Shown here piece after piece: positions 47,117 through 48,310 of a stretch of 64,000 bases of DNA; within the stretch, counting starts at the first letter, position 1, and every line of letters starts with the position of its first letter. The position numbers and the translations under genes are program-made. Location: positions 23,436,001 through 23,500,000 of the forward strand of contig NC_043021.1 of assembly GCF_006345805.1 (NCBI RefSeq). Reading direction: 5' to 3'. Source of the stretch: Octopus sinensis (Eukaryota). The notes under the pieces were generated by a model. It was not told the origin of the DNA. It saw only the letters and a program-made list of their open reading frames with translations, and ran no database searches.

Positions 47117-47188
47117 TTCAGTCCGAAAATAAAATCCTTGACAGGTTAATGCCCATTGCAGTAAAATAATTGAGAAAAGCTTCAACAT
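47117..47188 (-). pseudogene. Truncated paralogous STC-like exon 1
   Basis: [24 protein letters not shown], then an abrupt switch into a Penelope-type repeat (about 47025-47116). No donor, and I found no exon 2-4 copies between 35600 and 47100. Confidence 0.75.
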
Positions 47189-48157
47189 ACTTCGTATTTC
47201 TTTCTCTTGGCTTATATATAAGATCTTCTGTTGCTATCAACGTGGTCTTCTCCATTCAAGTTCCTTTCTCCAAGTCTATCGATGATGTCAGCTGTCAGTG
47301 GTTTCGTTTAGCTCCCTCCTGCGTTCATATAGTCATATATAGATATGTGTAAGTTTGTCCAGATATGTATATTTGTATATATGTATGTATGTATATATAT
47401 ATATATATATATATATATATATATATATATATATATATATATACATATATATATATATATATATATATATACATATACATATATATATATATATATATAT
47501 ATATATATATATATATATATATATATAAGCGTGTGTGTGTGTATAAATATATAGATATATAGACATAAATATATATACATGTATATGCATTTATGTAAAT
47601 ACATATGCATATATATATACATATATGTATATATATATTTGCCTATGGATATGTGTATATGTATGAATATGCATATATGTGTGTATCATAGATAGATAGG
47701 TAGATAGGTAGATAGATAGATAGATAGATAGATAGATAGATAGATAGATAGATAGATAGATAGATAGATAGATATATAGATAGATAGATAGATAGATAGA
47801 TAGATAGATAGATAGATAGATAGATAGATAGACAGACAGGCCAAGCTGTCAGTCTATATTATATTAATTGATGTAATATATAGATGATAAGCGTAACTCA
47901 TGTTCCTTGGAGGAACACTTTGAAAGGAGAGAGTGGGAGACCCATCCATCAACTGTATTCAGGAGTCAAGCAGGGATATTCACGAACCTGTGTATTCATT
48001 GATTTGCTTTCCATCATTTGGTGTCATTAGATAAACTGTTGCATCAGATGTATAGGAAAAATATGTAAGTGCTGCATTTATTCAATCACAATGCAATAAT
48101 TTCAGTTCAAAACATTACTAACAAAAGTGGCTGCTATCTATTTTCTAGGGAAGTGGT

Positions 48158-48310
48158 AGATAGATAGATAGATAGATAGATAGATAGATAGATAGATAGA
48201 TAGATAGATAGATAGATAGATAGATAGATAGATAGATAGATAGGTAGATAGATAGATAGATAGATAGATAGAGAGATAGAGAGATAGATAGATAGATAGA
48301 TAGATAGATA
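48158..48310. repeat. (GATA)n tract at the 3' end of copy D
   Basis: Direct reading. Further tracts lie at 54132-54226, 59459-59645, 33903-33982 and 47685-47833, plus (TATC)n at 25700-25788. Confidence 0.97.

Follow-up and report, generated by a model that had tools for sequence, protein, structure and literature searches.

Within 64,000 nucleotides of Octopus sinensis DNA (NC_043021.1, positions 23,436,001 to 23,500,000; hereafter the window), a segment of a signal-peptide exon occurs a second time without a single coding change. The second copy lacks the rest of its gene and lies below a long array of LINE retrotransposons, which raises the questions of what this copy is and what the repeats upstream of it have to do with it. 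An exact search located the 72-nt coding string at 34487-34558 and at 47117-47188, both on the minus strand, and gave no match in 100 shuffles. According to BLAST and pairwise alignment, the duplicated block comprises 47115-48310 and corresponds to 34485-35567. The identity of 72 of 72 coding nucleotides, pointed out in an earlier note on this DNA, extends to 74 of 74 in the alignment of the second copy (47188-47115, minus strand) with exon 1 of the intact gene (hereafter gene A), and ends at 47115. Upstream of the ATG, the two copies are 89% identical over 160 nt (18 mismatches), close to the 10% difference given earlier for the 5′UTR. A distal promoter block of about 320 nt is 90% identical between the units of gene A (unit A) and of the second copy (unit B). 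The chance of finding 74 identical positions in 74 at the divergence of the upstream 160 nt is about 2e-4.

Gene A has four coding exons on the minus strand (34558-13164). In a homology-based gene model, exon 1 (34453-34558) encodes the signal peptide in 106 nt, with the ATG at 34558 and the donor GT at 34452. The promoter and 5′ flank, delimited by alignment and identity comparison, lie upstream of it at 34559-35413. The model also includes exon 2 (20705-20862, 158 nt) and exon 3 (16783-17008), all on the minus strand; an unspliced form of exon 3 reads to a TAA at 16780-16778 and gives a product of 164 aa. Protein comparison placed exon 4 at 13164-13275, as in CAI9741003.1 and XP_036369325.1, with a spliced product of 200 aa. 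The N-terminus of the product is hydrophobic on inspection. The 164-aa product scored 32.5 bits against the Stanniocalcin family PF03298 (gathering cut-off 23), and a homologue from O. bimaculoides scored 34.4 bits. A profile of the gene A family matched human STC2 (8a7d_P; E=4.9e-5), and the alignment includes each of the nine cysteines of exons 2-3; a tenth cysteine is conserved in exon 4. A Pfam scan of exons 1-2 alone gave no STC match and only a weak one to DUF4802. The label "STC-like", first attached to this gene from its letters alone, is justified because the Pfam score exceeds the cut-off and the profile match to STC2 includes nine cysteines. The product of gene A is thus a predicted secreted stanniocalcin-like protein. 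Besides the Pfam score and the aligned cysteines, the family shares with human STC1 and STC2 (PDB 8A7D, 8A7E and 7Y5Q; PF03298) an N-terminal hydrophobic leader and four coding exons. However, its members are shorter (164-200 aa against 247-302 aa), and, unlike STC1 and STC2, they form a tandem multi-copy family with a dN/dS of about 1 or more in the mature region. A literature search by accession returned nothing for the gene A family.

The second copy (47115-47188, minus strand; exact search and alignment) retains 74 of the 106 nt of the signal-peptide exon, from its start onwards. Its homology to the intact exon ends 32 nt short of the splice donor, which is missing, and the absent 3′ part of the exon has one occurrence in the window. 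In tblastn searches of the 64-kb window, no exons 2-4 were found after this stub, as had been reported before, and no copies of exons 2 and 3 were found besides those of gene A. The promoter and 5′ flank of the stub occupy 47189-48156 on the minus strand (alignment, identity comparison and TRF) and include a TA/GATA microsatellite at 47363-47830. It had been thought that a repeat cuts the exon off. Compared with the intact O. sinensis gene LOC118767949, however, the stub locus lacks about 0.29 kb, reaching from the final 32 nt of exon 1 across the donor into the beginning of intron 1. A deletion of this segment, and not the insertion of a repeat, truncated the exon, because the breakpoint is followed by ordinary intron-1 sequence of the LOC118767949 type, which itself carries a dispersed repeat. 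This intron 1 remnant (40703-47114, minus strand) is 94-96% identical to intron 1 of LOC118767949 and contains no STC exons. The intron sequence after the stub runs for only about 6 kb and then gives way to the upstream region of gene A itself.

O. vulgaris has the stub too, broken at the same point and 96.9% identical over 836 nt. In that species, it carries an additional 1-nt indel and one substitution, and the canonical donor is absent in both species. A stub with an identical breakpoint in a second species is therefore old and not an artefact of assembly, and the shared junction together with the indel and the substitution shows that it is common to both species and decaying neutrally. Like a pseudo-exon, it has lost its donor and its downstream exons and shows decay in its O. 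vulgaris orthologue; intact copies of exon 1 are present in the genes neighbouring it. Judged by its sequence, the second exon 1 is most probably a dead stub, that is, an ordinary pseudogene fragment. A LINE (R1, described below) lies immediately upstream of the unit in the same orientation, and the copied segment ends within exon 1, as might be expected if read-through of R1 past a weak terminator had carried the tract, the promoter and a partial exon 1 to this site by 3′ transduction. We consider such an origin very improbable. After the breakpoint, which compared with the intact gene is an internal deletion, roughly 6 kb of matching intron 1 continue; the copy ends in neither a poly(A) nor a repeat tail; and in other paralogues LINE, tract and promoter stand in the same arrangement before complete genes. 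The continuation of intron 1 after the breakpoint and the lack of a tail led us to reject 3′ transduction.

The surroundings of the stub consist of repeated blocks. As the earlier note had recognised, the block 1-12264 mirrors 53483-61837; the two are 89-98% identical in alignment, except for one extra LINE at 7241-9970. On the right, segment X (59645-61837, minus strand; alignment) separates the preceding gene from the LINE array and consists of unique DNA. After it come a composite (TATC)n(TA)n(CCAT)n tract (59459-59644) and LINE R2 (54228-59458, minus strand; alignment and junctions), which belongs to a subtype other than R1 and has (TATC)n on both sides. LINE R1 (48311-54130, minus strand; domains and junctions) is L1-like, with ORF1, APE, RT and zf-RVT and a broken ORF2, and is joined at its 3′ end to the tract of unit B. 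This (TATC)n/(GATA)n tract of 38.5 copies (48157-48310, minus strand; TRF, alignment and junction) separates the 3′ end of R1 from promoter B. R1 and R2 together make up 11.1 kb, in keeping with the 11 kb of co-oriented LINEs described before. On the left, segment X′ (10059-12264, minus strand; alignment) is a copy of X downstream of gene A, with 98% identity. Beyond it lie a (TATC)n tract (9971-10058) and the 5′-truncated LINE L3 (7241-9970, minus strand; domains and alignment), which is situated inside a (TATC)n tract and is absent from the right mirrored block. Next come LINE L2 (1026-7181, minus strand; alignment and junctions), the counterpart of R2 at 89-95% identity, a further (TATC)n tract (658-1025) and the 5′ part of LINE L1 (1-657, minus strand; alignment and junctions), the counterpart of R1 at 94% identity, which runs off the edge of the window. 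The (TATC)47 tract of unit A (35414-35601, minus strand; TRF) has no LINE in the window. It adjoins segment U (35602-40046, minus strand; alignment), the LINE-free upstream flank of gene A, which is homologous to the upstream flank of LOC118767949.

The proteins closest to that of gene A are uncharacterised Octopus proteins, namely CAI9741002/3/4 in O. vulgaris, LOC118767948/9 in O. sinensis and LOC106876188/9 in O. bimaculoides. In O. vulgaris, the three genes follow one another on a single strand of OX597838.1, in a stretch of about 150 kb. The window shares 98.5% identity with the O. sinensis LOC118767948 locus across 24 kb of gene A, and its identity to O. vulgaris is 96-97.7% along most of its sequence. 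The part from X through R2, R1, tract and promoter B to the stub is collinear with O. vulgaris at 96% identity. The order in O. vulgaris is preceding gene, X, R2, R1, tract, promoter B, stub, exons 2-4, X′, L3 and L2, and from the equivalent of window position 1 it is about 12 kb further to the ATG of the next paralogue. This order therefore confirms a tandem cluster and a further exon 1 to the left of the window. Both had been anticipated by the earlier note, the first being also borne out by the paralogues in O. sinensis and O. bimaculoides. The window is located inside a minus-strand tandem cluster of STC-like genes in octopus.

The note had itself allowed that raw reads might expose the duplicate as a haplotype artefact. 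The region is rich in microsatellites and near-identical LINEs, and the three assemblies compared differ in structure, which would suit an origin of the duplicate exon 1, of the mirrored blocks or of both from haplotypes or assembly errors. Nevertheless, the two exon-1 copies have flanks of only 89-90% identity, and the stub with its breakpoint and both mirrored blocks recur in the same order in the independent chromosome assembly of O. vulgaris. Given this divergence and this sharing, we rejected the haplotig explanation and regard an artefact as extremely improbable.

From one tract to the other (48310 to 35414), the 12.9 kb of DNA form a circular permutation of the 5′ region of LOC118767949, with the tract as the permutation point. 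The order in LOC118767949 of O. sinensis is U-tract-promoter-exon 1-intron 1, and that in the window is tract-promoter-exon 1-intron 1-U-tract. This arrangement is what recombination from tract to tract, or the reintegration of a circular intermediate, would produce. Because of the permutation, the stub may have been born as a partial duplicate that perhaps never possessed exons 2-4 at its present site. The stub and the intact exon 1 might instead be tandem alternative first-exon cassettes of one gene, the stub being a decayed alternative promoter. The stub does lie 12.6 kb upstream of gene A exon 1 on the same strand with no exons 2-4 between them, its O. vulgaris counterpart is directly upstream of exons 2-4 of the orthologous gene, and the upstream flank of LOC118767949 holds intron-1 sequence of the A type. 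However, the stub has no canonical donor in either species, its downstream intron is of the type found in LOC118767949, a separate complete O. sinensis gene, and the circular permutation between the tracts fits a partial duplication better. We thus consider alternative cassettes unlikely, and keep to a dead stub in a cluster of separate genes.

If the stub is dead, its perfect match to a living exon calls for an explanation, and comparison of the paralogues provides one. Four promoter types can be distinguished, with 82-91% mutual identity over the proximal 160 nt. Identity among paralogues is 97-100% in exon 1, 98-100% in the first 50 nt of intron 1 and 94-100% in its last 700 nt, and falls to 80-83% exactly at the exon-2 acceptor. 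Among distant paralogues, exon 2 is 82-84% and exon 3 81-84% identical. Constraint or conversion ending at the exon boundary would explain this drop. By the Nei-Gojobori method, dS is 0-0.05 in exon 1, and the mature region has a dS of about 0.2 and a dN/dS of 1.0-1.4 among six sequences from closely related species. Between gene A and LOC118767948, there are ten nonsynonymous and zero synonymous changes, all in exon 2, despite 98.5% identity over 24 kb. The exon-2 segments compared are 20705-20862 in gene A and 22346-22503 in the LOC118767948 locus, and the 10 differences between them are all nonsynonymous. In gene A, the roughly 700 nt of intron 1 before exon 2 (20863-21570, minus strand) keep 94-100% identity even to distant paralogues in other species.

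Exon 1 and its intron flanks may be kept near-identical across the paralogues by constraint at the nucleotide level, by gene conversion or by both. The 74/74 match of the stub then appears to reflect a property of the whole family, in which the mature-peptide exons diverge quickly. No selection on the stub is needed, because the sequence it inherited is kept constant throughout the family and the time for divergence has been short; alternatively, the match may stem from a short conversion tract. The earlier proposal that the signal segment was conserved by selection or conversion holds in that the conservation is family-wide, but the second copy is a dead stub and not a selected paralogue.

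Pure (TAGA)n tracts are situated 856-1043 nt (unit A) and 969-1122 nt (unit B) upstream of the respective ATGs, and their starts at 856 and 969 nt agree with the distance of about 860-970 bp estimated for the GATA tract before. At the upstream end, the duplicated copies start inside the pure (TATC)n tract in both units; this is also where homology between units A and B breaks. Direct alignment of the ends of segments U and X showed no homology between them, and the stub and gene A therefore do not form a clean pair of filled and empty sites. A (TATC)n tract is present in seven of seven units at the same distance from the conserved promoter block.

Five LINE copies with ORF1 and ORF2 are found in the window, all on the gene strand. 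Pfam domains of ORF2 are Exo_endo_phos, RVT_1 and zf-RVT, and the best solved relative is human L1 ORF2p (4e-43 and 1.6e-18). The zf-RVT domain and the best match to L1 ORF2p are only suggestive of a placement in the Tx1 group. In the window and five related loci, 13 of 13 LINE 3′ ends read GCCCTGTGTGGCTAATAAA and pass directly into (TATC)n. At the other end, all eight full-length 5′ ends and that of the truncated L3 abut (TATC)n in the same set of loci, the copies coming from one cluster in three assemblies and many being related by segmental duplication. The 3′ regions fall into four types; identity is 93-99% among members of one type and 48-77% across types. Which type adjoins the tract varies from paralogue to paralogue, and different types at a homologous tract imply at least four independent insertions. 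Comparison of X′-(TATC)n-L3-(TATC)n-L2 with X-(TATC)n...-R2 gives a filled and an empty site, which are paralogous and not allelic, and L3 looks like the youngest insertion in the window. The remaining LINE copies multiplied by duplication of the gene unit that carries them. The suggestion that a LINE repeatedly lands upstream of these genes is hence supported by the junctions, by the filled and empty pair and by the differing subtypes, but much of the array was copied with the gene unit. As a separate observation, L3 keeps an uninterrupted RT ORF of 827 aa (7617-10097, minus strand).

We propose that the (TATC)n tract is an ancestral part of the unit and the insertion target of an L1-like, APE-type LINE, which appears specific for (GATA)n. 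Targeting may involve a sequence-specific nick in the repeat, followed by annealing and priming by the repeat-bearing 3′ end of the RNA, a mechanism suggested by the known microsatellite-specific LINE families. The co-oriented head-to-tail arrays would follow from the orientation of the LINE being fixed relative to the repeat. As the earlier note proposed, the arrays might alter the expression of the genes. In Argonauta hians, a distant relative of the LINE with 63% amino acid identity has the same 3′ motif and lacks the GATA tail. Another candidate for an independent copy is a 3-kb contig that stops short of the LINE 3′ end, and a metagenome scan for the 3′ motif gave chance matches only.

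The tract could alternatively be the 3′ tail of the LINE itself, with no target specificity, in which case the LINE-free tracts of gene A and LOC118767949 would have been left behind by recombination after LINE loss. Consistent with this, a tract is present at every LINE 3′ end, homology between units is lost within it, and U shows no homology to X. On the other hand, (TATC)n also borders the 5′ ends, both those of full-length copies and the truncated one of L3, the tract that holds L3 runs without a break in the mirrored block, and a tract occurs at the same distance in 7/7 units with three different LINE subtypes adjoining it. A mere tail is therefore quite unlikely, and an ancestral tract that receives insertions is preferred.

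Together, these results point to a unit in which a (TATC)n tract, a promoter of about 0.85-1 kb, exon 1, a long intron 1, exons 2-4, segment X and a LINE array follow one another, the LINE array of each unit ending at the (TATC)n tract of the next. The interval 47117-48310 is the head of one such unit, which is dead. We give a probability of about 0.8 to this reading as a whole: the head of a dead unit in a tandem cluster of STC-like genes, exon 1 sequences that are near-identical among the copies, and an ancestral (TATC)n tract that serves as the target of an L1-like LINE.

A more tentative idea, which we hold to be possible but rather doubtful, is that GATA tracts and LINE arrays act as a recombination substrate by which cassettes of promoter and signal exon are shuffled among venom-type STC-like genes. 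The O. vulgaris assembly is without 19 kb (window 45036 to 25920), including the promoter and exon 1 of gene A, and in the O. sinensis comparison locus LINEs lie directly at the gene A tract. Thus, the structure from the LINE array to intron 1 differs among all three assemblies compared (window, O. vulgaris and O. sinensis), to which mis-assembly in one of them may contribute. Since the structure differs in three closely related assemblies, the locus lends itself to the study of how repeats remodel promoters and first exons. If the idea is true, a LINE specific for (GATA)n and not described before takes part in shaping a cluster of toxin-like genes that diversifies rapidly.

Microsatellite-specific APE LINEs are known as Kibi for (TC)n, Koshi for (TTC)n, Waldo for (ACAY)n, Mino for (AC)n and Dong for (TAA)n (PMC3812793). 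Like these, the octopus LINE has APE and RT, both junctions in one microsatellite, a fixed orientation, head-to-tail arrays and no poly(A) tail. Unlike them, it is found in a cephalopod host and next to (GATA)n/(TATC)n, a target absent from the list in PMC3812793; if its specificity is true, (GATA)n is a new target among those of microsatellite-specific LINEs.

Conotoxins and snake venom PLA2 form multigene families in which a conserved signal or intron is combined with hypervariable mature exons. The gene A family resembles them in that exons 2-3 diverge more than the adjoining introns, with a dN/dS of about 1-1.4, a likeness that rests on six sequences from closely related species. The octopod-specific expansion of STC-like genes therefore has a substitution pattern typical of venom gene families, and toxin multigene families likewise combine a conserved signal exon and introns with mature exons that evolve fast, so that a toxin role may be suggested by analogy. 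Stanniocalcin mimics have been described among octopus venom-gland proteins as "stanniocalcin doppelganger toxins" of superfamily SF5 (bioRxiv 10.64898/2026.02.02.703354), and the genomic organisation of SF5 is not described in that preprint. SF5 and the gene A family are alike in description, both being secreted STC-like proteins of octopods; a conserved signal exon with fast mature exons, as seen in the gene A family, is the pattern expected of a venom family such as SF5.

Several minor features were also observed. Both copies of segment X contain an ORF start, MLQQAEISEDSDNAICALL (61262-61206 and 11680-11624, minus strand), and in the O. vulgaris annotation MLQQAEISEDSDNAICALL serves as coding exon 1 of CAI9741003.1, joined to the next exon by a splice that spans the entire LINE array. 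Where the intron remnant meets segment U, there is an inverted piece of about 450 bp (40428-40878), which matches a foldback-like repeat also present at 23496-23744. A dispersed repeat of about 430 bp is found at 27560-27990, 37804-38251, 39516-39787 and 16325-16591, and also in related loci. Finally, intron 1 of gene A harbours a Pif1/Helitron-type helicase fragment (PF21530, 3e-15; 31993-32541, minus strand) and three tandem copies of a 166-bp unit with 88-94% identity (32759-33256).
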